Below, one piece after another: positions 1,206 through 64,000 of a stretch of 64,000 nt of DNA (position 1 is its first letter; the number at the start of each line of letters is the position of its first letter). The position numbers were made by a program, and so were the translations under genes. This stretch comes from Bugula neritina (taxonomy: Eukaryota > Animalia > Bryozoa), in NCBI GenBank assembly GCA_964035545.1, contig OZ037772.1, positions 2,914,001-2,978,000 of the forward strand. Reading direction: 5' to 3'. The notes below the pieces were generated by a model. It was given only the letters and a program-made list of their open reading frames with translations, was not told the DNA's origin and searched no databases.

Positions 1206-4200
1206 GAAAGATCACTATGACATCACAGATCCCACAACACTACCAGTAGCTCAGCATGGAGACCCCTTAGAATACAAGTCTCCACCCAAACCTGCACCCA
1301 TTCCCTGCGATGTGTGTAAAGGTGGAACACAAGCTGCTGTGTTTTGTCTTGAGAGTCAAAAAAAGTTGTGTCAGCAGCATCAAGAAGTGAGTCTTTCTTA
1401 TATAATTTCTCAAGATTAGTTACTAAACCAGTTCTGGTTTGTATGTAGAATATTATTGAAAAGAAATGTTGAGTCTGTGTGACTTTTTATACTAAACACA
1501 CAGTTTCACAGTGCAGTGAGTCAACTATGACAGACTTGTTGGTGAAAATACAACCAACTAAACTGTTGACCTTTATTATACAGAATCACAGGGAGCTGAT
1601 GGGAGATAGACATCAGTTTATTGACATTGAGGTCTACAGAGCTTCTCCCCAAAGATATACTATCACTGAATGTGAACATCATAAAGAGGAACAGCTGACA
1701 GAAGTGTGTTCCAAGTGTCACCAGATATTCTGTATGAGATGTGATATGAGGACTGGCTGTAAGGATAAGACAGGTATTTACTTGCTGTTTCTATTTCTGT
1801 AGAAAGAAACTGGGAAATATTACAAGAACCTGTTTATTATTTTATTATTAAAGTGAGTTATGCAACAGTAAAAGAGGAAGTCAGTTTGTCAGCATTAGGG
1901 TTTGTGTGAGACAGAAGTGGATAGTGCAGGAGTTGATATTCTCACTGTTATGTTGAATATTTAGTATATTTCATCCTTCAAGTGTCTGTTTCCTTGATAA
2001 GATGGTATAGGCATAGCTTTAACTCAGTGGTGTCTCACCTTCTTCATACCATCCTCCTTTTTATGATTATTTTCTATTAAGTTTTCCGCCTTTTTGATAA
2101 AATTGTAATTTCATTTATAAAGAAAATCTGGGACAGGTTGTTTTCCTAATAATTCATTGAATGTAGAAAAAAGCAGCTAGAGTAGAGTGAATATTAGACA
2201 CATGGATGTAGAAGTAAACTTAGATTGTAGAGTGTAATGTGGATAAATAAATGAACTACATAAAATGAAGGAGTTATAATTATACATATTCATGTAACCT
2301 GGAACACAAGGCAAGAGCTCAAAAAGCTGGTAACAAACTCTGTGAAATTTTAGAAATGAAAACCCCTAAAAAACTCAAATTTCCTGTGAAGGGGAAATTC
2401 CCCAAGGTTGAGAGCCACTGCTTTAATTTTTTCAACTATTTCATTCCAAGTGCAGTGATTAATGAGCTAACCTCTGACATCTTTCTAGTCCAAGTTCAAC
2501 TGTCTATAGTTATTACATAGTATGTGTGTAGTGATACATCATCAACCTGTAGGTACAAGTAGCAGGTGTAGAATAAGTACAATATCACATCTATAATAAT
2601 GTTTTTATAAATAGTGTGATTTTATGTATACAGAGGAGACAGTAGCATCCCATGACTTGGCATCTTTGAGTGATTTGTCTTGTGAGTTACGAGAAAGTCT
2701 GACTGGTGGAATAGAGACTCTGTCTGAGAAAGTTGCAAAGTTGAATGACATCTCAAAGGATGCCTGGAAAGAACTGAGTAAAATAGAAGATGAAGTGAAG
2801 AAGATGGTTGCCAGAGTAAACGCTGTAGCTGACGCTCAGGTATGCTGACATGGTGATGCCATGTAATATTATTTCTGTTTGTCTGAAATTGGAATTTGCA
2901 TTTGGTCTTTGAGTTGTAATCAGAAATGAATTTCATTTGCCACTAGAATTAACTGGCCATTAAAGTATTATCATTCTGTGTACAAGTAGCAGTAGTCATT
3001 CATCACATGTTACTCAGTGCAGAGGAACCTGTCAATACAGATGACTCACTCATCCTTCTGCAACTGTCAATCACTCACACACAGAGGTTGGCTGGGTGAG
3101 TGATTGACAGGTGTCAGGAGGAGGAGACTAGTCACGTGATGTACTAGCTCTCTGCTGTGTATAGAGTGTCACGTGACTGAGTCATTGTCCACTCAGTGGG
3201 TGATCTGTCACTTTCATTTCCAGTGTAGAGGTTGTGAGGTACAGATGTGGTTACACTGTGTTACTATTTATTAGATAGAAAAGATTAGAAAGAGAGCTAC
3301 AAACCTGAGGCTAGAAATATATGGATATTTGAAGAGCTGCACACAGATAGTGGATAATTATAGAATAGAGCTGGCCTTGAGTAAGACAATGGGCAGACAG
3401 TCTCTGCTGGACATAGTACAACATGCAGTTGATAAGTTCAATGATGCAGGGATTGTGAGAGACTACAAAGAGCTGAGTGAGAAGGTGGAAAAGGCGTCAG
3501 ATATTGGTGTAATAGAGAAGTGTGTACTTCCAGACAGCATCTTGTTACCAACATGTAGGTGGAGTCTATAAATAGTAACACTAACTATAAATAACTTTCT
3601 GCTTGTAATCATGTGAGTTGTTTTCACTGAATATTTGAATAGTAGAATAAGTAGATAGAGTTTATTTATTAGAGAATTGAGTTTTGTTCTACTCTCACAT
3701 TATGAGACATTTCTGCAGTGTTTCAGAGTTTATGGTGTATAAGTGAGCTGCTAAACTGTGTTATGCTGACTACCTGCTGTCAGTATTAACAAGATATTCT
3801 CACTTAGACCTGTGCATCACGTAGCAACTTGTAGTAACTACAGACTGCTTGTATTTAAAACATTTTTTTATTTCAAGTTTGAAAAGCTGTTCCCTACTTC
3901 TTCAGGTGATGAGATTCTCAAATTATAGAATTGTTATTTTGTTGTTCCAGTCAGTGAAGACAGTCTGGGACTGAAGCTGCTGCAGCCACCATCTTCTCTC
4001 CAGTCTGATGGACTTCCTGTACGTGACTCGTGTTTCACAGTAAACATCTCAGCTGATGGACATCTTATGTGTTGGACATGGGGAGGTGTAGAAGTAATAA
4101 ATAGAGACACTCTGGATACTATCAGCTCAGTGAAACACACCAACACTACAGGGTGGGGGGAGATAATCCAACCTGAAGGGGTGATGGTTGGCATCTGGTA

Positions 4201-5771
4201 TAACATAGAGGAGGAAACAGCTGAAGCCTCACTTCTTGATCCGAACTCCTTTGAGAAGACTCGCTCCCTCTACAAGCAGCCATTAGGTGTACCTGCTTAC
4301 TATAGAATAGCTCAGCACGACTCACTGCTCTATATTGTAGACATGATAGAGAAACAGCTGGTAGTCTGTAATCTAGTTGACAATAAAATACAGAAGTTCC
4401 CACTTCCTGAGATGGAGAACCCTCTACCTGTATGCATCCTCCCAGACTCATCTCTCCTCATTGGAGACCGTGCTGCAGATGGTAAAGTGAGAAGATATAA
4501 AGTGGAGAACACAACTCTCACTCTAATGTGGGAGTTTCCTCACATCTCACATCCATCTGGTATTTCCTTTGATCCAACATCTGAACTGATTCACATCTGT
4601 ACACTGGAAGGACCTCTCCTCATCCTCTCACTTGAAGGTAAATACTCTGTTTATTATAGTAAGTTTAGTTGTTTTATATATAATTATGTTGTAGTAAACA
4701 ATATATTTTAATAATTAACAGTAAACAACTTCCACTCATAAGATATATTATGATATTGTTAGTATTTATCAAGTCACTGATATTATTTTTAGCTAAAAGT
4801 TATGTAATAAAGACTGTAACATGCTGATAGTAGATGTTATATTCTTCATCACATGACTTGTAGCTAATAATAATATTATTGAATAATACTGCCTCCCTAC
4901 AATAAGTTTATTTCCAGCTGCAGTAACATGCAGGATGTAAGCACAGGTAGAAGTGTATATTATATTGTATAGGTTTAAGGTGTACTCTGTGTAGTGTGCA
5001 GTGAGCTCTTAGTAAACTCTCTATTCAGTCTTCCTTTCCAAGGGTTCACCTGGTAGAGTAGAGAATAGGGACTCCACACTGCTGAGTGAGTTGGTGCTGC
5101 AAGGGGTTTAAAACCACCTATCAGCATGTCTAGTTAGTATACTATGCAAGTGTTTTACAGTAATTTTAGAGGTGCTCAGTCTAACAACTGTACAGACTGC
5201 CAGCTACACATGAGTTATGAGTTGTAGTTTGACTTCAGTCTAGTGCTGCTATTGTTTTGGTCATCAGATAATTTAAATGTTAATAATTTGATACTTTTTG
5301 ACTGCCATTACTGAGACTATGTAATTTGATGATGGCTGGTAGAGCAGTGTTTGCTGGTGGGACTCAGGTGGCTGTGGTTGGTTCTTGTCAAGTATTTAAT
5401 ATGTGATAATGTTGGAGTAGCTGCAGTATTATTAGAAGTAGACACGTGGGTGTGTTCTTGCTCAGAGCCACAGGCTAAGTTTATGGGTCAAGGTCAATAT
5501 TGTTGTATAACGAGACACTGTTTTCTATTTGAGTATTTACTTCATGCATGTAACCTGCTTAGTTGCATCTTTAAAGGCAGTCTGTCTGTTTCTCTCAATA
5601 CACACCAACTGATACAATATGATGCTATTATTTACAGGTCAACTGGTGCTTACTGTTCCCAGAGAAAGTCTTGGTGTTAGTGACTGGGTGTTTGACATTG
5701 CTGCGTATAACAGAGACACAGTGTTTTTAGCATGTGTAGATGGTCTGAGGAGATACACAATAAAATACTAA
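1206..5771 (+). CDS. TRIM/RBCC-like E3 ligase with NHL-like beta-propeller, copy A (RING exon lies upstream of the window)
   Basis: GT-AG exons 1206-1386 (CDVC..CLES..CQQH, B-box1-like), 1584-1773 (CEHH..CSKC..CMRC, B-box2-like), 2634-2839 and 3275-3554 (coiled coil), 3951-4637 (propeller: NPLPVCILPDSSLLIGD, HPSGISFDP) and 5638-5771 (ends TAA). Phases are compatible, there are no internal stops, and AATAAA is at 5949-5954. With the RING exon seen in copy B the protein would be 619 aa. Confidence 0.88.
2025..2420 (+). mobile_element. Non-autonomous hAT-like MITE in a TRIM intron
   Basis: Termini CAGTGGTGTCTCACCT...AGGTTGAGAGCCACTG. Flanked by near-identical 8-mers ctttaact/ctttaatt, the TSD length typical of hAT. 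Related copies at 26178-27246 (-), 30406-30906 and 33086-33680. Confidence 0.75.
3011..3161. repeat. Small foldback (MITE-like) element
   Basis: Imperfect terminal inverted repeats (tactcagtgcagag / ctctgctgtgta) and an internal stem ctgtcaatcactcac...gtgagtgattgacag. Also present in copy B (~34270-34420). Confidence 0.45.
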
Positions 5772-6494: not shown

Positions 6495-6990
6495 ATAGTA
6501 TTGATGGTACACTACCTTGTTTGGCCTTAATATTATAGATGGTATATTACCTTGTTTGGCCTCAATAGTATTGTTGGTAGACTACCTTGTTTAGCCTCAC
6601 TAGTATTGATGGTACACTACCTTGTCTGGCCTTAATATTATAGATGGTACATTACCTTGTTTGGCCTCAATAGTGTTGATGGTACACTACCTTGTTTGGC
6701 CTCAATAGTATTGGTGGTAGACTACCTTGTTTGGCCTCAATAGTATTGATGGTATACTACCTTGTTTGGCCTCAATAGTATTGGTGGTAGACTACCTTGT
6801 TTGGCCTCAATAGTATTGATGGTATACTACCTTGTTTAGCCTCAATAGTGTTGATGGTAGACTACCTTGTTTGGCCTCAATAGTATTGATGGTATACTAC
6901 TTTGTTTGGCCCTAATAGTATAGATGGTACACTACCTTGTTTGGCCCTAATAGTATAGATGGTACACTACCTTGTTTAGCCTCAATAGTC
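6495..6990. repeat. 35-bp minisatellite (aatagtattgatggtatactaccttgtttggcctc), ~14 copies
   Basis: Period 35 (actaccttgt at 6721 and 6756); contiguous units with no spacers. Confidence 0.95.
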
Positions 6991-10585: not shown

Positions 10586-10802
10586 TCTTTGTCAAAAACA
10601 CGGAATACAAGATTCACACACCAAACAGTACTCAGTGCTATATGAATAGACTCCAATATAGTTCTCCCTCCGTATCTCAGTAAGCTGAGAGACCTGACAC
10701 CTCAATTCATGACACAGTAGAATTCTTACCTTAGCAGAATACCATATTTAACACACGGATCTGTTAAATTATTTTGTCCCTACACACAAAAGGCTTTGAA
10801 AA

Positions 10803-11364
10803 CACAGGACAACAGGTTATGAATATACAGGACAACGGGCTATGAATATACAGGACAACAGGCTATGAATATACCGGACAACAGGCTATGAATATACAGG
10901 ACAACAGGCTATGAATATACAGGACAACAGGCTATAAATATACAGGACAACAGGCTATGAATATACAGGACAACAGGCTATGAATATACAGGACAACAGG
11001 CTATGGATATACAGGACAATAGGCTATGAATATACAGGACAACGGGCTATGAATATACAGGACAACGGGCTATGAATATACAGGACAACAGGCTATGAAT
11101 ATACAAGACAACAGGCTATGAATATACAGGACAACAGGCTATGAATATACAGGACAACAGGCTATGAATATACAGGACAACAGGCTATGAATATACAGGA
11201 CAACAGGCTATGAACATACAGGACAACAGGCTATGAATATACAGGACAACAGGCTATGAATATACAGGACAACAGGCTATGAACATACAGGACAACAGGC
11301 TATGAATATACAGGACAACAGGCTATGAATATACAGGACAACAGGCTATGAATATACAGGAAAC
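10803..11364. repeat. 23-bp minisatellite (gaatatacaggacaacaggctat), ~24 copies
   Basis: Homogeneous tandem units abutting ValRS exon 11372-11506. Confidence 0.96.
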
Positions 11365-14017
11365 AGAGCACCTGTCCCAAACTCCATCTCCACAAAGTCG
11401 TCAGCCACAATAGGTATTCTCCTGTCAGCAAAAAGATGTCTCACAAATTTCCCGTGTAAGTGTTTGTATCGGCCGTCTTCAGGGTGGACAGCCACGGCAG
11501 TGTCACCTACAATAGTTACCAGACTTTATAGTCTCTCACAGTATTGAGTATTGATATACAATTATATATTTACTGAGTGTTTACCAGATCCAACTTCACA
11601 GTCACTATACTCAGAGTACACAACTCCCAGTAAGTTAGTATCAAGCTAATTAACCACTAACCCCTTATTCACACTTACCGTATCGTATCGTAACAGCAAA
11701 TATCAGCCATTTTTACAAATGTCTGAGCTTCCTGTACGGTGTTGCGGTACGGTAGGATCAAGCACTGCTTGATTCAAATAAGTTGCGGCGGACTCCTATT
11801 GGACAGAAAAACTTTTGCGTTAATTCATTGGATATAAATGTCTAATGTAGCGTCATAGATCGTACCTAATAGCGGACTTTGAAAACTTCAACCCGCACCT
11901 TAAACCAAAATGGAATAATAGAATTAAAAAATTTAGGCTATCTCAAGTTCTCCACTACTGCTCCTAAGTGAGAATAGTTAGAGAAATCTACTCGAGTTAC
12001 TTCAATTGGCAGCAAGAGTCAGCCATTATTACGTTGCTAAGCAACAAAGCTATTAGTGACATTGATGTCTACTAACCCAACATAGTTTCTAATCTAGTTG
12101 TGGCCACAATAATCTTTTCGTCAGAATCTTCTACTTTATATGCAAAGGAAAGGAGAATTTCGAACTCCACCTTCTCCTTGTAGCCAGGCACAGAGAGCAT
12201 AGTCCTTCCTGTCAACTCTACTTTGTCTACCTGCAATCAGTGATACAACTCTCTCAGACTATACAGGTCAAAGGTTAAACTGTAGTGTGTGCTTCTGAGT
12301 CACTGTGTTCTCATTCTTTTCTATTAGTTCATATAATGTATATGAATGCTCGTACGAATGAATATGTGGCTGTGGTCTCATTGATGTATTCATTCGAAGA
12401 TAGTCATAATGTAATATATCAGGCTGTGTCTGAATACTACTATTAGGTTAGTTACTACCAACACACAAGTCTCGCAGTGAATAACCAGTTGACGTGCACA
12501 CAGTCGGGAGTCAGACTTATACTGTACGATATACCTCAATATCAGAGAAGGCAGAGTTGAGAGTACAGGACCAGTTGACCAGTCGGTTAGCTCTGTAGAT
12601 CACACCTTTCTCGTGCATTCTGATAAACGCTTTGTTCACCGCTTTCAAAGATTTCTAATAAACAATTATATATGAGTCATGTGTCAAGTGTGAACTGATT
12701 GGAGACCAGGCCTCATGATTAACCAATCATAGAGAGGATAACACACTGAGTCAGTAAACAGCCGACACGACATATAGACTCCACTACTCAAACATAATAT
12801 ATGTATAGAGAGGATAACTCCTCACCTCATCCATAGTGAACGTAGTTCTGTCCCAGTCATAAGACCCGCCCACTTTCCTCAACTGATGGTAGATTCTGTC
12901 TTCTTTTCCATAGAAATTATATAATAACACTGACCAATCATTGTGCTGCAAAACTTAGTTATATTAGCAACTTAAATAATGAGACCAATGATAGAGTGTG
13001 ATGAAGTAAACCTATATTTAACTTTTTGTATATTCAATTATATATAAGAATTTCATCATATTGACGCTATTATATTATCTTATATCAAACTGTAGCAACT
13101 GAACACCAATAAGATAAAATAAAAACTCAAACCCTAATACTAAGTCACTATGAAATGCATTTTCAAGATAAAATATTCCCTTACTGGTTCTTCCATTCCC
13201 ACACTCGTCTCACAAACTCATCTCGTCCCAAATCGTGTCGAGTTTTATTCTCTTCTCTAGCGAGTTTTTTCTCGACGACAACTTGAGTGGCTATTCCTGC
13301 GTGGTCACATCCGGGTACAAACAGTGTCACCTTCCCATTCATCCGGTGCCTGACAATACAACAGAACTGACACCTGCAGACACCTGACAACACAAGCATA
13401 TCAGACACCTAGAGATATTCCGGAAAGGTGCTGAAAGAAATATCTGTGGTTGAAACAACATCAATATAATAGATGAATGACTTATGCCAACCGGTACTTA
13501 ACACAAATTTTATCAGCATTCAAAAAAGAATTAACAGGGGGATGTTCATAGCCTGTCTGTGGAACATCTCAAAGTGACTTGGCAAGATGCCAAAATGTCA
13601 TGTAGTCACCACCAGAGGAATGGTGTCTACTGTTACATGCTATAAGCTACATACACCACCAGTTTAGTGACTAGGTAAGTACGGAGTTGTCTCATCTATA
13701 TGAATGAACATCTCACCACCGAACTATCGCATCCTCAACTGCCCCCAATCACATCTCTCTCGGTTACAAAGTAAAAAGCAACCAATCACAGTACCTGTTA
13801 CAACAGAGTAACAAATCACACCTCTACGTGTTAGAAGTAACCAATCACACATTATAGACTTTACTATGATGAGAAATGTACCTTTGAGATTATACTCAGG
13901 TTTGAAGAATCCTTCCTTCTCCCACCAAGAGCACCAGGCAGCTTCCACATAAGACGGGGAATAAGAACCAGGCATGGGACACGTCGTGTCTAGAATAACA
14001 GAAAACTATAAAGTATA

Positions 14018-20152: not shown

Positions 20153-23100
20153 AGTCTGCACTAAGGCAGGGAGTAGGCTAAGTAATCATATTGAATCCCA
20201 GCAGTGCTTGTTACTTCAACTGACAGGATTACTGTGTATGATAGTTACTCTGAGTGGTTTCCATGGATCATTTTTACCATATTGTTTGCCACATGATGCA
20301 TTGTCTTAGTAAAAACAAGAAAACAAAGAAATATACCAGAAATGTTGAGAATTGTGGTGTTCCAGAATTAATAAATGACCACTTGTAATGCGTACTGGTG
20401 CTGCTTGGTTCATAGGACCTGTCGAACAAGCTGGAGAACCTGGTCTGGATGGCAGAAATGGAAAGACAGGAGAAACTGCACGAACTAGTATGCCTGGTCC
20501 AACCGGCTCAAGGGGGGTCACTGGAGAACCCGGATCTGATGGAAGGTATTTTTTGTGCTTTACTCTACCCTATGCAGCTTCTTGGAACTTTTTATTTGAT
20601 TTAGTTTTTATAATTTGTTATCAATTTTTTCAGAGACGGTTTACCTGGAGTACCGGGTGCTGATGGTAGACCTGGGGAGCAGGGTGATCAAGGAGACAAG
20701 GGTGATAAGGTAAGAACATTCTTTATTCAGTTTTCTATTTATTTCAGTTCTCTGGTTTTCCACTAGTCAATCCTGTAGTTGTTTATTTGTTTTAGTTTAT
20801 TTATGTTAATACTAAAGTTGCTTCAGTGACATCACATGATGTAATATATTACATAACAGTGCAGTATAATACACCATAATATAATATGTTATACAATACA
20901 ATAATATTACAGAAAATATAATTCACTAATATCTCACAGCTAAGGTGTGTCTCCTAAATATATTCATTACTATAGGGACCAGCTGGGCCACAGGGTGCTT
21001 CTGGACCAACTGGATTGTCTGGGCCAACTGGTCCTCAGGGACCCCAGGGAGCTTCCGGGAATTCCCGGCGAACAAGGACCTAAAGGTATGAATTAAGTTG
21101 AACCAATCTTTGTCCTTAGTTATTGGCCATCAACAGAATCTTGACTCTAAGAGTTATCCTACTTGGTAAGAAGGTAAGGCAATTCCTAACTCATGATAAT
21201 ATGAATATCATCTGCTGTTGTAAGACCCACTGGTTTCCAGGGACCTCAGGGATTCCTCGGAGCTCCTGGTGTTGATGGTTAAAGGGGAGATGTTGGATCA
21301 GTTGGCATTGCTGGACCACCCGGGCTACGGGGTGCTGACGGCAAAGAAGGAATAACTGGTCTTCTGGTGCTATGGGACCACCTGGACCTGATGGTGCTAA
21401 GGTAAACACTTACACTGTTAGCAGGTTATTGTTATTCATCTTGTTGGTTTAGTGGTAATAAACCAATAGTTCTAGGGTGAGCAAAGGAGAGTTGGGGAAA
21501 TGGGTAGTCCTGGCAGTCCTGGACCTCCTGGACCACCTGGTGAAGCCCCAGTATTTGGTTAGTTATTAGCAAAGCCAAGTTATTGTCCATTACTTGTATC
21601 TTTTTTTATTTTCTTTCAACTGTTTATTGGTAATATTTTGGGAATTTCATCCATAGCCTGTGGTTGAAGCTTTATTTTATTCTACCATGGGTTATGTTAG
21701 GTGCGCCCCCTATGATGATGAGTGCAATGATGTCCAACGGTAAAGGTGTACAAGCAGATGATGCAGGCGCCAACAATGAGCTCTATAATATGTACCTCAG
21801 TGAGTAATGGTCATGATGTGCTTTGATGTTGCCTGCTTTGTAGTGGAAAAGATCTTTTAAATAGTGTTTTGGAACTCAAATGACGGACCTGTTTCAAATT
21901 GTGTGTATGTTTTTACAGACAAACAATTTTATAATTTACTGCTAGAAACTATTGTAATAAAAATATAGACAGCTGTTATAATGTATTTTTCCTCCTAGCA
22001 TTGATGATTGACATTCTTGTTTGATGAGTCACCTATTTAGTTCGTTTCTCCAGTTAAATGTTTCTACATTCTGACATATTATATAATGTTGATTTATTGC
22101 TGTTAGCTTACATAACTACTTCCACTTTATTTCTCTAGAAACAGAAGTAAGAGACGGGTCCAAAGACGGCCCTGTTAGAGACTGTAGAGAACTCTTCACT
22201 GAAAACCCAGACTTCAAAAGTGGAACTTATTGGGTGAGATAAGATGCTGATATGTTTCTATTTTCTCTGCTCAGAAGAAATCTGCATCCAAGTCTAATGA
22301 CTGAAATTTTGTGAACATGTTTTACATTCTACAATTACTACTCCTGAGGTGTCAATATCATGTCACGTGAAGTTTCCACAGATATTTAATGTTTAAGAAT
22401 AAGAGTTTTTCCATGAGTTGCCTGTATTATATAATTCTGTATATTTAACAGCTGAACAGGTTTTAGAAGTTTTATGTGATGTTTGTATTGTGTTAGTGTG
22501 AAAAAGAGAAGTTGTATTCTCTATTGTTTGTTGTCAGGTGGATCCAGATGGTGGCTCCATAGCTAATGCTATCCAGGCTTACTGTCGCAAGGAAAGGAAG
22601 AGCACTTGTATTAATGCCAATACCTCTGAGTTTGCCACCAAATCGTACGTCACCCAGCAGCTAGATAATCAGCCATTCGTTGCTAAACACATGGGAACAA
22701 CAATTGTGAGTGTTTATCTTGCATCAACCATGACTTTCTCAGTAATACTTGAGAATATTCAAAAGTTTTATGTTGAGAATTGTCGCTATAGTAACATATT
22801 TGTTTACTGTATGGATGTTGATAAGTGTTGCTATAGTAACATGTTGGTTTCCTGTATGGATGTTGATAAGTGTTGCTATAGTAACATGTTGGTTTCCTGT
22901 ATGGATTGTAGTTTGAGTATCAGGCAGAGTCTTCCCAACTCAACTTCCTTCGAATTCATTCTGAGAGAGCAAAGCAAACCCTGACTTACAGGTAATAGTC
23001 ACTGCTAGCAGCTTATCAAATAGTCACTAGTTGCTAGTCACCAGTTGCTAGTTGCCAATCACCAGATACTAGTCCTCTACTATGTTGCAAGTCACTTGAT

Positions 23101-24425: not shown

Positions 24426-24776
24426 TGCAAAGACTTAACATACCAAGCAACTGTGACAAGACATGACAATAACTCCAGCCAATCATACATATCATACATA
24501 CATCATACATAGCCTAAAATGGATCATTTTAAAAATTTGTAAATCATACTCAAACCTAATCAACAGCTTTAACTTATGTAGCTATGAGAAATATGTAATT
24601 TTTAAACAACCGGAGTTATCCACTCTCAACAAACGCAAAGAGCGAAGTGTGAAAATTCCACGCTAGTGACCTGCCACACACAGTGCGTGTGTTGCGAGTG
24701 CAAAATATTATTAGCAAATGATGTTAGCGTTAAACTTTACTGCTCGCCTACAGATGTTTGTTTTTAAACAGCGTCA
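24426..24776 (+). mobile_element. Penelope-like element GIY-YIG endonuclease remnant (internally deleted, copy A)
   Basis: CKDLTYQATVTRHDNNSSQSY, then a deletion, then SLKWIILKICKSYSNLINSFNLCSYEKYVIFKQPELSTLNKRKE. The fuller version is in copy B. Confidence 0.75.
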
Positions 24777-26065
24777 CTATGTTATACAGTATATTATGTC
24801 ATACAGTATATTATGTCATACAGTATACTATGTTATACAGTATATTATGTTATACAGTATATTATGTTATACAGTATATTATGTTATACAGTATACTATG
24901 TTATACAGTATACTATGTTATACAGTATAGTATGTTATACAGTATACTATGTTATACAGTATATCATGTTATACAGTATACTATGTTATACAGTATATTA
25001 TGTTATACAGTATATTATGTTATACAGTATACTATGTTATACAGTATACTATGTTATACAGTATATTATGTTATACAGTATATTATGTTATACAGTATAC
25101 TATGTTATACGGTATATTATGTTATACGGTATACTATGTTATACAGTATACTATGTTATACAGTATACTATGTTATACAGTATACTATGTTATACAGTAT
25201 ACTATGTTATACAGTATACTATGTTATACAGTATACTATGTTATACAGTATATTATGTTATACAGTATACTATGTTATACAGTATATTATGTTATACAGT
25301 ATATACTATGTTATACAGTATACTATGTTATACAGTATATATTATGTTATACAGTATATTATGTTATACAGTATACTATGTTATACAGTATACTATGTTA
25401 TACAGTATATTATGTTATACAGTATATTATGTTATACAGTATATTATGTTATACAGTATACTATGTTATACAGTATATTATACAGTATACTATGTTATAC
25501 AGTATATTATGTTATACAGTATACTATGTTATACAGTATATTATGTTATACAGTATATTATGTTATACAGTATACTATGTTATACAGTGTATTATGTTAT
25601 ACATTATACTATGCTATACAGTATACTACGTTATACAGTATATTATGTTATACAGTATATTATGTTATACAGTATACTATGTTATACATTATACTATGCT
25701 ATACAGTATACTACGTTATACAGTATATTATGTTATACAGTATATTATGTTATACAGTATTCTATGTTATACAGTATAATATGTCATACAGTATACTATG
25801 TTATACTGTATATTATGTCATACAGTATATTATGTTATACAGTATACTATGTTATACAGTATATTATGTTATACACTATACTATGTTATACAGTATATTA
25901 TGTTATACAGTATACTATGTTATACAGTATATATTATGTTATACAGTATACTATGTTATACAGTATTTTATGTTATACAGTATACTATGTTATACAGTAT
26001 ATATTATGTTATACAGTATATTATGTTATACAGTATACTATGTTATACATTATATTATGTTATAT
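24777..26065. repeat. 17-bp satellite (tatgttatacagtata[c/t]), ~75 units
   Basis: Tandem 17-mers; source of the long repetitive MLYSILCYTVYYVIQY ORFs. Confidence 0.98.
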
Positions 26066-29910: not shown

Positions 29911-32900
29911 ATGGCAGAATCCAGAGTTGTGAAAAGAAGACTAAACAATTCGTATCGCTGTGGGTACTGCTCGCAGTACTTCAACAAACTTGAAGATCCC
30001 AGAACTCTGCCCTGTCTGCATGTGTACTGCATGAGATGTTTGAAGACTGACATAGGTGGTAGGAAGGATCATATTAGATGTGCTTATTGTAGGTGAGTTA
30101 CAGTACATAACACAATATGTCATGTCATAGGCTTGCGTATGATTTTCTCACTATAATCTAGGAGTTGTCTGATCTGTGTCTATGAAAAGCAAACAATACT
30201 GTATATTCTATGTGAACTCTGGTTACTAACTTGTGGAGTGTGTGGATATCTTTTCATTAGGTAGAGAAAATAACTGTTATGTAGATTGCACCATCAGCTG
30301 TCCTCTCTTGTTGAATTGTGGTGCTGTTTGATGTCATGGGATTGGGGTTGTCTCCTCATTATATTATTTTGTTCTCATACAGTACAAGTACTTGTTATTG
30401 TTAGACCAACCTTTTTCATATCATCCCCACTTTCATAAATGTTTACTATTAATTATCCCCCCTTTAAAAAACCAAAAAATTTATGACTGACATAATGATA
30501 ATATAGATTACTATGCAATATTTTTCCTATTACATTTGAATATAATATAATTATTTCTGATAATTATATTATGCATGTATAAAACACAGAGCAGTTCAAT
30601 TATTAATATTATGGCTGCAGCTGATGACATTATGTCAGCTTGCTTTCCAACCTCCCACCCCAACCCCTAAACCCCAACCCCAATATTGTAATTAAAACAC
30701 ATTCATGTAGAAGTAGACTGAGATGGCAGAATTGGTTAAATAGATAAGCTAAGATGAATGCTTATAGATATACATGTACATGTAACTCGCAAGAGCTCAA
30801 AAGTCTTTAACAAACTGCTTGAAATTTTCAAAATCGAAATCCAGGCTCCCCCTAAAAAGCCCAAATTCCCTCTTATAGGGGGATTCTCCCAGGTTGGGAA
30901 TCACTGTGTTGAATTGACTTGTGTTTACTATCTTCTTTCCTGCAATTATAAACATGTATGATGTTGTCATGACAACAGAGTTGCTGTGGCACAAAGTACA
31001 GTTTACTAGTATGTAGTGATTGTGTAGTGAGAGTGGAGTGTCTGGTTATTGTCCATGGTTATGTGTAATCTGTAAGGAGTAGAATTATATTATTTTAATA
31101 TAATGTTGAGGTACTTTTATAATGGCAGTTTGGTCAATAGCTTTAGTTCTAATGCGATAGACTCATAGCTCTGGAGTCTAGCAGCTGCTACTATTACCAC
31201 TAGCTGTTCAAAATTCTGCCAACATCCGGGCTGCCAGAGCATAATAGCCATTGGCAAGGCCAAGCAGTCACTGGGAAATTATTTGACTAAAAAGCAGGTC
31301 TTATGACAATTAGTAGTCAGTCCCTTAGACAGGAATCAGTGATTCTGTGACCTATTTAGTTAAATCCAGAGCTGAACTTTTGATTGATTATTAGATGGCC
31401 ATCACAATTGTATTTGGTACAATATATTATTATGGGGTGTCAATCAGTATCTAATATAATCTGTGAATTGAGTGTCTCCTTTAGCTTTGATGAGTTGGTA
31501 CTTCTTCTACCATCAGTCAGTTGTATTGAGTGTTACTTTGTACTGAGTCATGAATAGTGTTGAGGATTTGGGCCTATATTATGCCACCCCCGCTCTCTGA
31601 CTTAGACTGAGACCCAACCTGCTGCACATACATAGCAGTACTACACTGAAGATAGTTAACATGTGTATGTGTCATCCTACTAGTAATGGATTACTAACTA
31701 CAACTTATCCTACGACTCCCTCTTTTTATGCTAGCTGCACGAGATAGACAACTCACAGTGACACGCACTCACAGTGCACTAGCTCTTGACACATTGCCAA
31801 GGATGATGAAATGACAGTTTCGCGCCACTCCTAGCAGTTAGAGTGGCAGGGAATAGTTGTAGTATGTTGTAGTATTGGCTCTTCAGAATTCACCCCTCAG
31901 TAATTAGCTGCATTGCACAAACTTGCAACAAAAGTGAATAATTATTGACAATATGGCCTCCACTCAGTAGTTAACTAGTAATTTGTCTTGTCATTTTACT
32001 CTACAAGTTACAGTTGAGTCTATTTGTTGAGTAGCAGTTCTTTGTCATGAGTGACTATTTTCCAGCATATTAGTACATAATATAGTCAAGTGTGTTTTTG
32101 TGATAGCCTGTGGTCTATATAATGAATGTGTGTTGATGAGTGATGAGTATTTATTTGAGTATTTGTCAAGGACATAGCTGTGTGTGTGGATGGAGTATTT
32201 CATTACTTGAGATATACTAAACACAGCTAACACAGATAACATACTGATTGCTATATATTGTAGGAAAGATCACTATGACATCACAGATCCCACAACACTA
32301 CCAGTAGCTCAGCATGGAGACCCCTTAGAATACAAGTCTCCACCCAAACCTGCACCCATTCCCTGCGATGTGTGTAAAGGTGGAACACAAGCTGCTGTGT
32401 TTTGTCTTGAGAGTCAAAAAAAGTTGTGTCAGCAGCATCAAGAAGTGAGTCTTTCTTATATAATTTCTCAAGATTAGTTACTAAACCAGTTCTGGTTTGT
32501 ATGTAGAATATTATTGAAAAGAAATGTTGAGTCTGTGTGACTTTTTATACTAAACACACAGTTTCACAGTGCAGTGAGTCAACTATGACAGACTTGTTGG
32601 TGAAAATACAACCAACTAAACTGTTGACCTTTATTATACAGAATCACAGGGAGCTGATGGGAGATAGACATCAGTTTATTGACATTGAGGTCTACAGAGC
32701 TTCTCCCCAAAGATATACTATCACTGAATGTGAACATCATAAACAGGAACAGCGGACAGAAGTGTGTTCCAAGTGTCACCAGATATTCTGTATGAGATGT
32801 GATATGAGGACTGGCTGTAAGGATAAGACAGGTATTTACTTGCTGTTTCTATTTCTGTAGAGAGAAACTGAGAAATGTTACAAGAACCTGTTATTTATTA

Positions 32901-35900
32901 TTTTATTATTAAAGGGAGTTATGTAACAGTAAAAGAGGAAGTAAGTTTGTCAGCATTAGGGTTTGTGTGAGACAGAAGTGGATAGTGCAGGAGTTTATAT
33001 TCTCACTGTTATGTTGAATATTTAGTATATTTCATCCTTCAAGTGTCTGTTTCCTTGATAAGATGGTATAGGCATAGCTTTAACTCAGTGGTGTCCCACC
33101 TTCTTCATACCATCCCTCTTTTTATAAATGTTTTCTATTAAGTTTCCCCTCTTTTGAGAAACACTGTAACTATTCATAAAGAAAATCACGGTACAGATTT
33201 TTTCCAGAAAAGGCCAGTGTGTTTGACATGGACCAGTGTCTGCCACAACTTCAGTTCAGCTTTGAAAGCATTGATGCTGGTATTAAAAGCAGTGAGTTGA
33301 TGATTATACTCATTCATTTTAGGTTCAGAGTTTTTAGTACAGCAAATATAACTACTAGGTATGCAGTAAATAGTTTATGGAGATCAGTTTGACTGGCTGC
33401 AACAACTTCCTGTTAGTTTTTGCTTTCAAGAAACTTTTTAACCTCCATTCGTCGTAGGAGGCGTAGCAGCTAGAGTAGAAAAGGAAAAGGCACTTTGTGT
33501 TTGACATGGACCAGTGTCTGCCACAACTTCAGTTTAGTTATAGTTATACATATACATGTAACCTGGAAAACAAGGCAAGAGCTCAAAGAGCTGGTAAACT
33601 GTGTGAATTTTTTAGAAATGAAACCCCTGAAAAACCCAAATTCCCTGCAGGGGGAATTCCCCCAAGGTTGGGAGTCACTGCTCTAACTTTTTCAATTATA
33701 TTATTCCAAGTGCAGTGATTAATGAGCTAACCTGTGAAATGTTTCTAGTCCAAGTCCAACTGTCTATAGTTATTACATAGTATGTGTGTAGTGATACATC
33801 ATCAACCTGTAGGTACAGGTAGTAGGTGTAGAATAAGTACAATGTCACATCTATAATAATGCTTTTATGAATCGTGTGATTTTATGTATACAGAGGAGAC
33901 AGTAGCATCCCATGACTTGGCATCTTTGAGTGATTTGTCTTTTGAGTTACGAGAAAGTCTGACTGGTGGAATAGAGACTCTGTCTGAGAAAGTTGCAGAG
34001 TTGAATGACATCTCAAAGGATGCCTGGAAAGAACTGAGTAAAATAGAAGATGAAGTGAAGAAGATGGTTGCCAGAGTAAACGCTGTGGCTGACGCTCAGG
34101 TATGCTGACATGGTGATGTCATCTGATGTATTTCTGTTTGTCTGAAATTAGGTTTTGCATTTGGTTTTTGAGTTGTAAATAGAAATGAATTTCATTTGCC
34201 ACTAGAATTAACTGGCCATTAAAGTATTATCATTCTGTGTACAAGTAGCAGTAGCCATTCATCACATGTTACTCAGTGCAGAGGAACCTGTCAATACAGA
34301 TGACTCACTCATCCTTCTGCAACTGTCAGTCACTCACACAGAAAGGTTGGCTGTCTGAGTGATTGACAGGTGTCAGGAGGAGGAGACTAGTCACGTGATG
34401 TACTAGCTCTCTGCTGTGTATAGAGTGTCACGTGACTGAGTCATTGTCCACTCAGTGGGTGATCTGTCACTTTCATTTCAAGTGCAGAGGTTGTGAGGTG
34501 CAGATGTGGTTACACTGTGTTACTATTTATTAGATAGAAGAGATTAGAAAGAAAGCTACAAACCTGAGGCTAGAAATATATGGATATTTGAAGAGCTGCA
34601 CACAGATAGTGGATAATTATAGAATAGAGCTGGCCTTGAGTAAGACAATGGGCAGACAGTCTCTGCTGGACACAGTACAACATGCAGTTGATAAGTTCAA
34701 TGATGCAGGGATTGTGAGAGACTACAAAGAGATGAGTGAGAAGGTGGAAAAGGCTACAGATATTGGTGTAATAGAGAAGTGTGTACTTCCAGACAGCATC
34801 TTGGTACCAACATGTAGGTGGAGTCTATAAATAGTAACACTAACTATAAATAACTTTCTGCTTGTAATCATGTGAGTTGCCTTCACTGAATATTTAAATA
34901 GTAGAATAAGTAGATAGAGTTTATTTATTAGAGATTGAGTTTTGTTCTACTCTCACATTATGAGACATTTCTGCAGTGTTTCAGAGTTTATGATGTATAA
35001 GTGAGCTGCTAAACTGTGTTATGCTGACTACCTGCTGTCAGTATCAACAAGATATTCTCACTTAGACCTGTGCATCACGTAGCAACTTGTAGTAACTACA
35101 GACTGCTTGTATTTAAAACATCTTTAGCTAAAAGTTATGTAATAAAGACTGTAACATGCTGATAGTAGATGTTATATTCTTCATCACATGACCTGTAGCT
35201 AATAATAATATTAGTGAATAATACTGCCTCCCTACAATAAGTTTATTTCCAGCTGCAGTAACATGCAGGATGTAAGCACAGGTAGAAGTGTATATTATAT
35301 TGTATAGGTTTAAGGTGTACTCTGTGTAGTGTGCAGTGAGCTCTTAGTAAACTCTCTATTCAGTCTTCCTTTCCAAGGGTTCACCTGGTAGTGTAGAGGA
35401 TAGGGACTCAACACTGCTGAGTGAGTTGGTGCTGCAAGGGGTTCAAACCCACCCATCAGCGTGTCTAGTTAGTATACTATGCAAGTGTTTTACAGTAATT
35501 TTAGAGGTGCTCAGTCTAACAACTGTACAGACTGCCAGCTACACATGAGTTATGAGTTGTAGTTTGACTTCAGTCTAGTGCTGCTATTGTTTTGGTCATC
35601 AGATAATTTAAATGTAAATAATTTGATACTTTTTGACTGCCATTGCTGAGACTATTGTAATTTAATGATGGCTGGTAGAGCAGTGTTTGCTGGTGGGACT
35701 CAGGTGGCTGTGGTTGGTTCTTGTTAAGTATTTAATATGTGATAATGTTGGAGTAGCTGCAGTAGTAGTAGAAGTAGACATGTGGGTGTGTTCTTGCTCA
35801 GAGCCACAGGCTAAGTTTGTGGGTCAAGGTCAATACAGTTGTATAAAGAGACACTATTTTCTGCTGTTTGAATATTTACTTCATGCATGTAACCTGCTTA

Positions 35901-36110
35901 GTTCCATCTTTAAGGGCAGTCTGTCTGTTTCTCTCAATACACACCAACTGATACAATATGATGCTATTATTTACAGGTCAACTGGTGCTTACTGTTCCCA
36001 GAGAAAGTCTTGGTGCGAATAGCGTGGTGTGGGACATTGCTGTGTGTAACAGAGACACAGTGTTTCTAGCATGTGGAGATGGTCTGAGGAGATACACAAT
36101 AAAATACTAA
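29911..36110 (+). CDS. TRIM/RBCC-like E3 ligase, copy B; complete RBCC but most of the beta-propeller deleted in frame (390 aa)
   Basis: Coding exons 29911-30092 (C3HC4 RING: CGYC..PRTLPCLHVYCMRC..CAYC), 32264-32444, 32642-32831, 33894-34099, 34534-34813 and 35977-36110. Total 1173 nt with no stops, all GT-AG; AATAAA at 36286. Confidence 0.82.
30406..30906 (+). mobile_element. hAT-like MITE family copy (diverged)
   Basis: ccaacctttttcatatcatcccc...cccaggttgggaatcactg; shares internal blocks (catgtagaagtag, aagagctcaaaag) with 2025-2420. Confidence 0.6.
33086..33680 (+). mobile_element. hAT-like MITE at the same site as 2025-2420, different interior
   Basis: CAGTGGTGTCCCACCT...AGGTTGGGAGTCACTG, flanked by ctttaact/ctctaact. 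Contains a ~35-bp direct repeat (tgtgtttgacatggaccagtgtctgccacaacttcagtt) at ~33218 and ~33496. Confidence 0.75.
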
Positions 36111-50944: not shown

Positions 50945-53406
50945 ATTAAATTACTAGTTTATATTACCAAGTTATATTACTAGTTTATATTACCAAGTTA
51001 TATTACTAGTTTATGTTACCAAGTTATATTACCAGTTTATGTTACCAAGTTATATCACTAGTTTATGTTACCAAATTAAATTACTAGTTTATATTACCAA
51101 GTTATATTACCAAGTTATATTACCAGTTTATATCACCAAGCTATATTACTAGTTTATATTACCAAGTTATATTACTAGTTCATGTTACCAAGTTAAATTA
51201 CTAGTTTATATTACCAAGTCATATTACCAGTTTATATTACCAGTTTATGTTACCAAGTTATATTACTAGTTGATGCTACCAAGTTGTATTACTAGTTTAT
51301 ATTACCAAGTTATACTACCAAGTTATATTACTAGTTTATGTTACGAAGTTATATTAGTAGTTTATGTTACCAAGTTATATTACTAGTTTATGTTACGAAG
51401 TTATATTACTAGTTTATGTTACCAAGTTATATTACTAGTTTATGTTACCAAGTTATATTACTAGTTTATGTTACCAAGTTATATTACTAGTTTATGTTAC
51501 CAAGTTATATTACTAGTTTATATTACCAAGTTATATTGTTAGTTTATGTTACCAAGTTATATTACTGGTTTATATTACCAAGTTATATTACTAGTTTATA
51601 TTACCAAGTTATATTACTAGTTTATATTACCAAGTTATATTACTAGTTTATATTACCAAGTTATATTACTAGTTTATATTACCAAGTTATATTACTAGTT
51701 TATATTACCAAGTTATATTACTAGTTTATGTTACCAAGTTATATTACTGGTTTATATTACCAAGTTATACTACGAAGTTATATTACTAGTTTATGTTATC
51801 AAGTTATATTACTAGTTTATATTACCAAGTTATATTACTAGTTTATGTTACCAAGTTATATTGTTAGCTTATGTTACCAAGTTATATTACTAGTTTATAT
51901 TACCAGTTTATGTTACCAAGTTATAATACTAGTTTATGTTACCAAGTTATACTACTAGTTTATGTAACCAAGTTATATTACTAGTTTATATTACCAGTTT
52001 ATGTTACTAAGTTATAATACTAGTTTATGTTACCAAGTTATACTACTAGTTTATATTACCAAGTTATATTACTAGTTTATGTTACCAAGTTACATTACTA
52101 GTTAATGTTACCAAGTTATATTACTAGTTCATGTTACTAAGTTATATTACTAGTTTATGTTACGAAGTTATATTACTAGTTTATATTACCAAGTTATATT
52201 ACCAGTTTATGTTACCAAGTTATATTACTAGTTTATGTTACCAAGTTATATTACTAGTTTATGTTACCAAGTTATATTACTAGTTTATGTTACGAAGTTA
52301 TATTACTAGTTTATGTTACCAAGTTATATTACTAGTTTATATTACCAAGTTATATTACTAGTTTATGTTACCAGTTTATGTTACCAAGTTATATCACTAG
52401 TTTATATTACCAAGTTATACTACCAAGTTATATTACTAGTTTATGTTACGAAGTTGTATTACTAGTTTATATTACCAAGTTATATTACTAGTTTATGTTA
52501 CCAAGTTATATTACTAGTTTATGTTACCAAGTTATATTACTAGTTTATGTTACGAAGTTATATTACTAGTTTATGTTACCAAGTTATATTACTAGTTTAT
52601 ATTACCAAGTTATATTACTAGTTTATGTAACCAAGTTATATTACTAGTTTATGTTACCAGTTTATGTTACCAAGTTATATCACTAGTTTATATTACCAAG
52701 TTATACTACCAAGTTATATTACTAGTTTATGTTACCAAGTTATATTACTAGTTTATGTTACCAAGTTATATTACTAGTTTATGTTACCAAGTTATATTAC
52801 TAGTTTATGTAACCAAGTTATATTACTAGTTTATGTTACCAGTTTATGTTACCAAGTTATATCACTAGTTTATATTACCAAGTTATACTACCAAGTTATA
52901 TTACTAGTTTATGTTACGAAGTTATATTACTAGTTTATGTTACCAAGTTATATTACTAGTTTATATTACCAAGTTATATTACTAGTTTATGTAACCAAGT
53001 TATATTACTAGTTTATGTTACCAGTTTATGTTACCAAGTTATATCACTAGTTTATATTACCAAGTTATACTACCAAGTTATATTACTAGTTTATGTTACC
53101 AAGTTATATTACTAGTTTATGTTACCAAGTTATATTACTAGTTTATGTTACCAAGTTATATTACTAGTTTATGTAACCAAGTTATATTACTAGTTTATGT
53201 TACCAGTTTATGTTACCAAGTTATATCACTAGTTTATATTACCAAGTTATACTACCAAGTTATATTACTAGTTTATGTTACGAAGTTATATTACTAGTTT
53301 ATGTTATCAAGTTATATTACTAGTTTATATTACCAAGTTATATTACTAGTTTAGGTTACCAAGTTATATTACTAGTTTATGTAACCAAGTTATCTTACTA
53401 GTTTAT
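50945..53406. repeat. 26-bp satellite (ttatattactagtttatgttaccaag; two related 13-mers), ~2.45 kb
   Basis: Tandem array unique to copy B, with a 182-bp higher-order period in its 3' part. Confidence 0.97.
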
Positions 53407-53507
53407 ACTGCTAGTATTCAACAACTATTCTCCATCACATCTCAACTCTGACGCAACTACACTGACTAATCATACGAATAGTTTATAGTTTTTGTTGAAC
53501 TCTTCAG

Positions 53508-61940: not shown

Positions 61941-64000
61941 CAGTATATTACGTTATACAGTATATTATGTTATACAGTATACTATGTTATACAGTATACT
62001 ATGTTATACAGTATACTATGTTATACAGTATACTATGTTATACAGTATACTATGTTATACAGTATACTATGTTATGCAGTATATTATGTTATACAGTATA
62101 CTATGTTATACAGTATACTATGTTATACAGTATATTATGTTATACAGTATATTATGTTATACAGTATATTATGTTATACAGTATATTATGTTATACAGTA
62201 TATTATGTTATACAGTATACTATGTTATACAGTATACTATGTTATACAGTATATTATGTTATACAGTATACTATGTTATACAGTATATTATGTTATATAG
62301 TATACTATGTTATACAGTATATTATGTTATACATTATATTATGTTATACAGTATATTATGTTATACAGTATACTATGTTATACAGTATACTATGTTATAC
62401 AGTATACTATGTTATACAGTATTTTATGTTATACAGTATACTATGTTATGCAGTATATTATGTTATACAGTATATTATGTTATACAGTATACTATGATAT
62501 ACAGTATACTATGTTACACAGTATATTATGTTATACAGTATATTATGTTATGCAGTATACTAAGTTATACAGCATATTATGTTATACAGTATATTACGCT
62601 ATACAGTATATTATGTTATACAGTATACTATGTCATACAGTATACTATGTTATACAGTATATTATGTTATATAGTATACTATGTTATACAGTATACTAAG
62701 TTATACAGTATATTATGTTATACAGTATATTATGTTATACAGTATACTATGTTATACAGTATACTATGTTATACAGTATACTATGTTATACAGTATTTTA
62801 TGTTATACAGTATACTATGTTATGCAGTATATTATGTTATACAGTATATTATGTTATACAGTATACTATGATATACAGTATACTATGTTACACAGTATAT
62901 TATGTTATACAGTATATTATGTTATGCAGTATACTAAGTTATACAGCATATTATGTTATACAGTATATTACGCTATACAGTATATTATGTTATACAGTAT
63001 ACTATGTCATACAGTATACTATGTTATGCAGTATATTATGTTATACAGTATACTATGTTATACAGTATATTATGTTATACAGTATATTATGTTATACAGT
63101 ATACTATGTTATGCAGTATATTATGTTATACAGTATATTATGTTATACAGTAAACTATGTTATACAGTATAATATGTTACACAGTATACTATGTTACACA
63201 GTATATTATGTTATACAGTATATTATGTTATACAGTATACTAAGTTATACAGCATATTATGTTATACAGTATATTATGTTATACAGTATATTATGTTATA
63301 CAGTATACTATGTTATGCAGTATATTATGTTATACAGTATATTATGTTATACAGTAAACTATGTTATACAGTATACTATGTTATACAGTATACTATGTTA
63401 TACAGTATACTATGTTATACAGTATATTATGTTATACAGTATATTATGTTATACAGTATACTATGTTATACAGTATATTATGTTATACAATATAGTTTGT
63501 CATACAGTATACTATGTTATACAGTATACTATGTTATACATTATATTATGTTATACAGTATATTATGTTATACAGTATATTATGTTATACAGTATACTAT
63601 GTTATACAGCATATTATGTTATACAGTATATTATGTTATACAGTATATTATGTTATACAGTATACTATGTTATACAGTATATTATGTTATACAGTAAACT
63701 ATGTTATACAGTATAATATGTTACACAGTATACTATGTTACACAGTATATTATGTTATACAGTATATTATGTTATACAGTATACTAAGTTATACAGCATA
63801 TTATGTTATACAGTATATTATGTTATACAGTATATTATGTTATACAGTATACTATGTTATGCAGTATATTATGTTATACAGTATATTATGTTATACAGTA
63901 AACTATGTTATACAGTATATTATGTTATACAGTATATTATGTTATACAGTATATTATGTTATACAGTATACTATGTTATACAGTATATTATGTTATACAT
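61941..64000. repeat. 17-bp satellite, copy B (>=120 units, runs off the window)
   Basis: Same unit as 24777-26065, with higher-order periods of 374 and 544 bp. Confidence 0.98.

Follow-up and report, generated by a model that had tools for sequence, protein, structure and literature searches.

A TRIM-like gene family of Bugula neritina with hypervariable loops on one face of a predicted NHL-type propeller: a candidate recognition repertoire

Introduction

Why do two adjacent copies of a TRIM-like gene in the bryozoan Bugula neritina differ so densely within a short patch of their terminal exon? The patch lies in a window of 64,000 nucleotides (G000:C8:2914001-2978000), which is the whole stretch of DNA analysed here, taken from an assembly of 216,009,554 bases. 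An earlier note on this window had read the difference as the mark of a tandemly amplifying family under diversifying selection at the binding face of its propeller. TRIM-NHL proteins are the textbook conserved, slowly evolving class of TRIM proteins, and the fast-evolving vertebrate TRIMs use a SPRY domain. To our knowledge, almost nothing has been established about bryozoan immunity. The published assembly of B. neritina comprises 216.00 Mb in nine chromosomes (PMC11480708).

Results

Gene structure within the repeat units

Self-alignment of the window revealed two adjacent units, each at least 26 kb long, spaced about 30-31 kb apart and 91-96% identical. Based on reading frames, AG/GT sites and intron phases, a six-exon gene with a product of about 536 amino acids was assembled (Table 1). 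Exon 1 of the first copy (A) sits upstream of the window and was therefore read in the second copy (B), where it matched the Pfam families zf-RING_UBOX (29.1 bits, cut-off 25.2) and zf-C3HC4 (22.3 bits, cut-off 21); the Cys/His ligands of the RING finger were kept in all 18 copies read. Exon 2 matched zf-B_box with 21.4 bits (E = 2.8e-4), under the cut-off of 24.1 bits, and its Cys/His-rich segment was invariant among the copies read. For exons 3 and 4, presumed to encode a coiled coil, there were only weak Pfam matches to helical or coiled families (Prefoldin and bZIP, E 0.005-0.15), and exon 4 of copy A has an alternative acceptor at 3347. Exons 5 and 6 had no match in Pfam. By eye, no signal peptide was evident in the first 60 residues and no transmembrane segment in the translated exons.

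The units carry other sequences besides this gene. Collagen open reading frames, recognised by matches to the collagen triple helix (E = 1.8e-6) and to the C-terminal domain of fibrillar collagen (E = 1e-5), lie at 20388-20663 and 22538-22984 on the plus strand and recur in the second unit at around 57.2-60.3 kb. The passenger collagen that the earlier note had described is thus real, in that each repeat unit holds a collagen gene or gene remnant. Large minisatellites with periods of 35, 23, 17, 26/182 and 17 nt were found inside each unit, at 6485-6993, 10786-11366, 24776-26064, 50946-53407 and 61941-63999. Their copy number is unequal between units A and B, and the 17-nt array gives rise to spurious open reading frames of more than 400 amino acids.

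Table 1. Positions of the gene features in the window, and of related loci elsewhere on C8 (given as G000:C8 coordinates or in Mb)
Feature	Position	Strand	Basis or remark
Copy A exon 2, B-box-like zinc finger	1592..1773	+	AG/GT, phase 2 to phase 1
Copy A exon 3, presumed coiled coil, part 1	2634..2839	+	Splice sites and phase
Copy A exon 4, presumed coiled coil, part 2	3335..3554	+	Phase-1 donor ACAT/GTAGGT fits exon 5 phase
Copy A exon 5, predicted NHL-type propeller blades 1-5, patches 1a-5b	3951..4637	+	687 nt, phase 1-1
Copy A exon 6, strand D of blade 5, blade 6 (by repeat match) and stop	5638..5771	+	Phase-1 acceptor, stop 5769-5771
Copy A patch 6a, codons 242-247, inferred D-A loop and start of strand A of blade 6	5676..5693	+	
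Copy A hypervariable codon 262, patch 6b, inferred B-C turn of blade 6	5736..5738	+	
Copy B exon 1, start codon and C3HC4 RING finger	29911..30092	+	Pfam; donor AG/GTGAGT
Copy B exon 2	32650..32831	+	BLAST, 99% identity to exon 2 of A; frame open
Copy B exon 3	33894..34099	+	Similarity among copies; frame
Copy B exon 4	34594..34813	+	Similarity among copies; frame
Copy B deletion junction	35120..35125	.	Self-alignment blocks
Copy B exon 6, the reported feature	35977..36110	+	A/B alignment
Copy B patch 6a allele (ANSV-VW)	36015..36032	+	24-nt string match elsewhere on C8
Isolated exon 5 fragments	G000:C8:263239-263424, 456614-456799, 739519-739716, 2726007-2726189, 3732591-3732776, 3858901-3859011		
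Young group of copies	L031 ~0.305, L034 ~0.501, L038 ~0.777, L045 ~1.478, L049 ~1.784, A ~2.918 Mb		

Divergence of the terminal exon between the two copies

Direct alignment of the terminal exons of A and B confirmed what had been reported for this patch. Of their 134 nt, 13 are different, which amounts to eight amino-acid replacements from A to B (V242A, S243N, D244S, W245V, F247W, A251V, Y252C and V262G in domain numbering) and a single silent change, TTA to CTA. Eleven of the 13 differences are packed into 31 nt (A 5677-5707), a slightly tighter cluster than the 33 nt given previously. Both exons have an AG acceptor, start in phase 1 and end with TAA. The surrounding sequence differs at 26 of 852 positions in intron 5, 16 of 592 in the 3' flank and 6 of 311 in intron 4, and the overall mismatch rate between the two units was 4.0% over 16,449 aligned positions. 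When the local comparison was run from position 612 onwards, none of the 15,527 sliding windows exceeded the patch window (11/31), which shared the top rank. The binomial P was 1.5e-8 for a single window, or about 8e-6 after correction for about 500 independent windows. The earlier note had also counted 12 differences in 857 nt of four shared upstream exons, which could not be reproduced: only three such exons (exons 2, 3 and 4; 608 nt) are found for both copies in the window, and they differ at 10 positions, eight nonsynonymous and two synonymous.

The 24-nt patch string of B has a single mismatch to G000:C8:2256115-2256138 on the minus strand, in a copy 694 kb away, and the nearest relatives of A are copies 1.1-2.6 Mb away rather than B. 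Since the allele of B recurs in another copy, the difference between A and B is one between alleles of a family pool, either inherited or converted, and not a divergence in place after tandem duplication.

Loss of the main propeller exon from copy B

Self-alignment further showed that copy B lacks the stretch corresponding to 3867-4785 of A. The deletion is clean, spans about 918 bp and takes in the entire 687-nt exon 5, and there was no exon 5 match in B. Among 48 plus-strand copies on C8, B is the only one in which exon 5 is missing upstream of exon 6. It also carries private changes at conserved residues, K9R, L95R, C138F and V242A. As exon 5 is phase-symmetric, a splice from exon 4 to exon 6 would keep the frame in B; however, having lost the main propeller exon, its last-blade exon cannot now work in a propeller. 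Copy B is a one-off derivative, and its patch is a family-pool allele rather than evidence of selection on B itself. The A/B pair alone is therefore a poor witness, B being a truncated derivative and A having its closest relatives elsewhere in the cluster.

Size and integrity of the family

A search of the genome with the protein sequence of exon 5 identified about 100 full-length copies with 52-100% identity, distributed over C8, C3, C2, C1, C4, C5, C6 and C9, and about 65 of these roughly 100 intact copies lie on C8. The 5' end of exon 6 gave 69 matches with two mismatches or fewer, of which 59 were on C8 (6 kb-4.67 Mb), nine on C3 and one on C4. A family of only two copies, named beforehand as an outcome that would refute the proposal of diversifying selection, can thus be set aside.

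The copies are largely intact. Exon 5 measures 687, 690, 693 or 696 nt and is bounded by AG and GT sites in each of the 22 copies for which its full length was read, and exon 6 measures 134, 137 or 140 nt, with frames nearly all open. Exons 1-4 are 96-100% identical among copies (exon 1, 97-99%; exon 2, 97-100%; exon 3, 98-100%). Only a handful of the approximately 100 copies of exon 5 contain stops; premature stops or frame disruptions were located at G000:C8:3797617-3798303 (L012), 3108763-3109314 (L029), 2339747-2340424 and 4360624-4361310. These few disrupted members are as expected under birth-and-death turnover. Between the genes of C8 there are six isolated open fragments of exon 5, which cover residues ~30-91 only, at 70-81% identity, and may be relics or possible conversion donors.

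In sequence databases, homologues were very few: a search of 1.84 billion representative sequences returned 30 matches at E <=1e-3, 14 of them at <=1e-10. No spliced junction between exons 4 and 5 or exons 5 and 6 was present among 74 database homologues, and the eight homologues examined in full were exon read-throughs from metagenomic DNA. Sequencing runs labelled as RNA held 0.21-0.34 of the sequence words, compared with an exonic fraction of about 0.35; the RNA/DNA label is guessed.

Predicted fold and position of the variable patches

The product of exon 5 was modelled with AF2 from an alignment of 56 sequences, leaving out blade 6, which is encoded by exon 6. The model had a pLDDT of 90.4 and contained 19 strands, which form four full blades of four strands each plus three strands of the next. 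In an exhaustive structural alignment against 48,161 chains, the NHL domains of Mei-P26, TRIM71, TRIM2, Lin41 and Brat were all among the top seven (Z 18.4-19.5), with other six-bladed propellers scoring within 1-2 Z of them and a sequence identity of only 6-13% to the TRIM-NHL matches. Foldseek against the PDB returned generic propellers only. A profile built from family members alone, with true NHL proteins excluded, matched PknD and the PknD-derived Pizza propellers in the PDB (5e-9 to 5e-4), and the sole distant relatives among the 1.84 billion representatives were proteins of about 550 residues with Pfam NHL repeats. Exon 6 completes blade 5 with its strand D and adds a sixth repeat, which matches in length and motif. 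As judged from the predicted structure, the C-terminal domain meets the description of a six-bladed NHL-type propeller, with blade 6 assigned by repeat match.

In the protein alignment, the scaffold is invariant and twelve variable patches break it up, at two per repeat of 44-46 residues. The patch reported initially is the eleventh (codons 242-247), and codon 262, at which A has valine and B glycine, is the twelfth. Every one of the six blades contributes two of the twelve patches, its D-A loop and its B-C turn, the placement in blade 6 being inferred from repeat periodicity and propeller topology. To keep structure and variability independent, residues were classed by the DSSP strands of the model alone. 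The nonsynonymous diversity (piN) of D-A loops was 0.163 and that of B-C turns 0.227, compared with 0.013 for A-B loops, 0.022 for C-D loops and 0.052 for strands. In a propeller built of antiparallel four-stranded blades, the topology places D-A and B-C connections together on one face, opposite the A-B and C-D connections. In the modelled blades 1-5, the variable residues are accordingly not scattered, as they would have been had the proposal been wrong, but occupy the loops of one face, and the loops of the opposite face are conserved. The D-A/B-C face, 'top' by convention, is the macromolecule-binding face of TRIM-NHL domains, around the central channel (PMC9634614). That the twelve loops form a ligand-binding top face in this family is inferred only from loop placement in the model and from that precedent, without binding data.

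Diversity and selection across copies

Thirty-six of the approximately 100 copies were compared, namely 20 ten-kb loci, 14 3.3-kb loci, A and B. The mean pairwise distance was 0.030 and 0.034 in introns 4 and 5, and 0.067 and 0.069 in exons 5 and 6. The propeller exons are thus about twice as diverse as the introns, and up to about 25-fold more diverse between young paralogs. Six such copies (L031, L034, L038, L045, L049 and A), spread over 2.6 Mb of C8, have introns that are 0-1% apart, except for intron 5 of L031 at 2.7%, and nevertheless differ at up to 36 of 687 positions in exon 5 and up to 13 of 134 in exon 6. Between L034 and L045, for example, there were 1 difference in 1000 positions of intron 5, 3 in 396 of intron 4 and 0 in 629 of the 3' flank, against 28 in 687 of exon 5 and 6 in 134 of exon 6. 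This group points to recent long-range duplication or homogenisation, with the differences confined to the propeller exons.

In patch 6a, 23 distinct alleles were counted in 34 copies, with piN above 0.15 at codons 244, 245 and 247; patch 6b had 12 alleles in 34 copies and eight different amino acids at codon 262. The diversity at codon positions 1, 2 and 3 was 0.387, 0.366 and 0.162 for the 41 hypervariable codons, 0.024, 0.020 and 0.038 for 231 scaffold codons, and 0.016, 0.005 and 0.025 for 263 codons of the RING-to-coiled-coil module. Third positions of the scaffold are at intron level, and the hypervariable codons exceed the introns more than 10-fold at replacement positions; synonymous diversity in the patch codons is raised as well, at 0.13. 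Counted as minimum changes, the hypervariable codons have undergone 156 nonsynonymous and 16 synonymous substitutions, a per-site ratio of 2.8 (binomial p = 7e-6), in comparison with ratios of 0.58 in the scaffold and 0.27 in the RING-to-coiled-coil module (Fisher p = 2e-8 and 1e-9, respectively). As these codons were picked by piN, the ratio of 2.8 is circular, whereas the test by DSSP class and the comparison with introns are not. Diversity- and class-based tests were used in place of the tree-based M7/M8 and MEME models, recombination being pervasive. A dN/dS near or below 1 at the variable sites had been named as a result that would overturn the proposal; the value obtained, about 2.8, lies above it, with the above reservation, and the diversity of these codons is more than ten times that of the introns.

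Other features of the variation were also recorded. The transition/transversion ratio was 1.89 in introns and 0.83 in exons 5-6, and Trp and Arg were enriched 5.2-fold and 2.3-fold, respectively, at variable positions. All exon indels are multiples of three; in 21 full-length copies they fall in three D-A loops (blades 2, 3 and 6) and one B-C turn (blade 6), where copies other than A have in-frame 3-nt insertions beside codon 262 (indel columns at A 5740), and two partial copies show further changes, again in frame, at the blade 2 B-C turn. Considering that relaxed constraint cannot surpass the neutral level, and that a hotspot free of selection would have affected third positions and bottom-face loops too, these patterns indicate selection. 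In the 36 copies sampled, the twelve loops of one face are under diversifying selection, far above the neutral level given by the introns, and the RING-to-coiled-coil module, near-identical across the sampled copies, is under purifying selection. The claim of diversifying selection thus holds for the top-face loops of the family as a whole; it cannot be rested on the A/B pair from which it was originally drawn, in which pool alleles are compared and one partner is truncated.

Recombination between copies

Recombination tests, which the earlier note had recommended, were positive: 43% of informative site pairs failed the four-gamete test, intron 5 included, and in a PHI-type test adjacent sites were more compatible than permuted ones (p = 0.0005). 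A single event could be delimited by comparing L005 (1.785 Mb) with its sister copy L003 (0.778 Mb) and with L025 (1.946 Mb). L005 and L003 have eight differences in 2 kb, of which seven lie within nt 31-66 of exon 6; L005 is identical to L025 from -73 to +89, with 142 differences elsewhere. These comparisons document one conversion tract, 36-162 nt in length, that carried patch 6a between copies. On a larger scale, L038 and L049 differ at 1 of 687 positions in exon 5 but at 7 of 134 in exon 6, and A and L038 are identical in exon 6 but differ at 26 of 687 positions in exon 5; exons 5 and 6 reassort between copies. As far as can be told from aligned sequences, the exchange of patch alleles among copies by short-tract gene conversion is demonstrated.

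Discussion

We consider it likely that the approximately 100 genes form a lineage-specific, TRIM-like NHL-propeller family whose hypervariable loops on one face constitute a recognition repertoire; expression, function, ligand, localisation and E3 activity are all inferred. One competing account would attribute the A/B difference to a defunct copy B, whose last exon either drifted neutrally or received one conversion tract, without any diversifying selection. Copy B does invite such a reading, since it alone among the 48 plus-strand C8 copies lacks exon 5 and has private changes at K9R, L95R, C138F and V242A, and a conversion origin of its patch is plausible in view of the recurrence of the allele elsewhere. 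However, neutral decay cannot yield 35% divergence in 31 nt next to flanks of about 3%, and the difference of only one base between the B allele and that of another copy means that most of the 11 differences are older than the decay of B. As an account of the whole-family pattern it is refuted, because the same two patches are hypervariable in 34 other copies whose frames are nearly all open, and on the whole we find the account scarcely credible. It is also possible, though unlikely, that the patches are old divergence passively preserved, the introns and scaffold having been homogenised and the mismatch-rich patches having escaped conversion with no positive selection at all. Conversion and recombination are indeed pervasive among copies, scaffold and introns are very similar in all of them, and the raised synonymous diversity of the patch codons (0.13) is in keeping with such a history. 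Saturated neutral patches, however, should vary equally at the three codon positions, where 0.39, 0.37 and 0.16 were observed, and should keep the intron transition/transversion ratio of 1.89, where 0.83 was observed. Nor would passive preservation leave bottom-face loops invariable and all indels in frame, and the one documented conversion tract carries a patch instead of avoiding one.

Two further alternatives concern how the diversity arises and what it serves. Targeted mutation or programmed diversification, by templated conversion from fragment cassettes or by deaminase-like hypermutation, with selection only secondary, seems distinctly unlikely to us. Multi-nucleotide patch alleles move as short tracts, the six isolated exon 5 fragments on C8 could be donors, and patch codons have elevated diversity at third positions and at synonymous sites, all of which such a process could produce; but neither a mechanism nor a motif or enzyme is known for it, the unequal diversity of the codon positions points to selection on the protein, and germline paralog diversity alone suffices for the data. 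A stronger version, to which we give very little credence, would make the cluster a templated diversification system in which the approximately 100 genes and the fragments act as donors and acceptors and short-tract conversion, perhaps regulated and even somatic, recombines the twelve loops; if true, it would be a bryozoan NHL-propeller counterpart of the pseudogene conversion of chicken immunoglobulins or the assembly of lamprey VLRs. With regard to function, Bugula is colonial, and allorecognition in other colonial animals rests on hypervariable multigene clusters, so the role of the family might lie in allorecognition or the recognition of kin, between colonies or larvae, and not in defence inside the cell. 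This is very unlikely in our judgement, as known allorecognition determinants are surface or secreted proteins, whereas the product here begins with a RING finger and, by eye, has no evident signal peptide or transmembrane segment.

The reading we prefer, a germline recognition repertoire acting inside the cell, would work as follows. The constant half of the protein, with its RING finger, B-box-like finger and putative coiled coil, would be the conserved effector, and the twelve top-face loops would bind diverse targets, for instance proteins or RNAs of viruses or transposons, or non-self molecules of another kind. By bringing a target to the constant E3 ligase, the propeller would couple intracellular recognition to ubiquitination. 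The repertoire would be encoded in the germline, its diversity kept by selection and by gene conversion between copies. Such an arrangement would be analogous to that of TRIM5 or finTRIM, built on an NHL rather than a SPRY scaffold.

In a full-text literature search we found no published description of a bryozoan or invertebrate TRIM-NHL expansion, and the genome papers of B. neritina and Flustra make no mention of TRIM or NHL. Among known systems, the closest in behaviour are the fast-evolving 'group 2' TRIMs of the TRIM5 and finTRIM type, which have been set apart from the conserved 'group 1' that includes TRIM-NHL proteins and have been reported absent from invertebrates (PMC2533329). TRIM5alpha, TRIM22 and the finTRIM/btr genes resemble the Bugula family in having recognition-domain surface loops under positive selection and in being clustered, lineage-specific and duplicating (PMC2533329), and the concentration of positive selection in such loops, a trait of the TRIM5/finTRIM type, is met here. 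They use a B30.2/PRY-SPRY domain, whereas the Bugula family uses the NHL-type propeller, and no match to a SPRY domain was obtained for it with Pfam, the model or the structural search. The Bugula family also differs from them in having about 100 members and twelve regularly spaced variable loops.

In domain order and in the six-bladed NHL propeller, the likeness is instead to TRIM71/LIN-41, TRIM2, TRIM3, TRIM32/Thin, Brat, Mei-P26 and NHL-2. These canonical TRIM-NHL proteins are single-copy, slowly evolving developmental regulators, whereas the Bugula family is massively amplified and diversified, has an exon 5 on which the Pfam NHL model is silent, and has no filamin domain. A third resemblance is to plant NLR/LRR clusters, MHC and KIR, which likewise combine a conserved scaffold with hypervariable, solvent-exposed positions of ligand contact, and which form large clusters with a mosaic from short-tract conversion, birth and death, and occasional pseudogenes; fold and effector differ, the Bugula protein being inferred to be intracellular and to have its own E3 ligase module. 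The family thus matches group 2 TRIMs in behaviour and TRIM-NHL proteins in fold and domain order, with the B-box below threshold and the coiled coil putative. It presents the NHL propeller as a hypervariable scaffold, in which twelve loops share one face, the genes number about 100 and conversion shuffles the alleles. If binding, which is inferred, can be established, the family would be a natural collection of propeller binders on a fixed framework, and it offers a testable candidate for an intracellular variable-receptor repertoire in an invertebrate.
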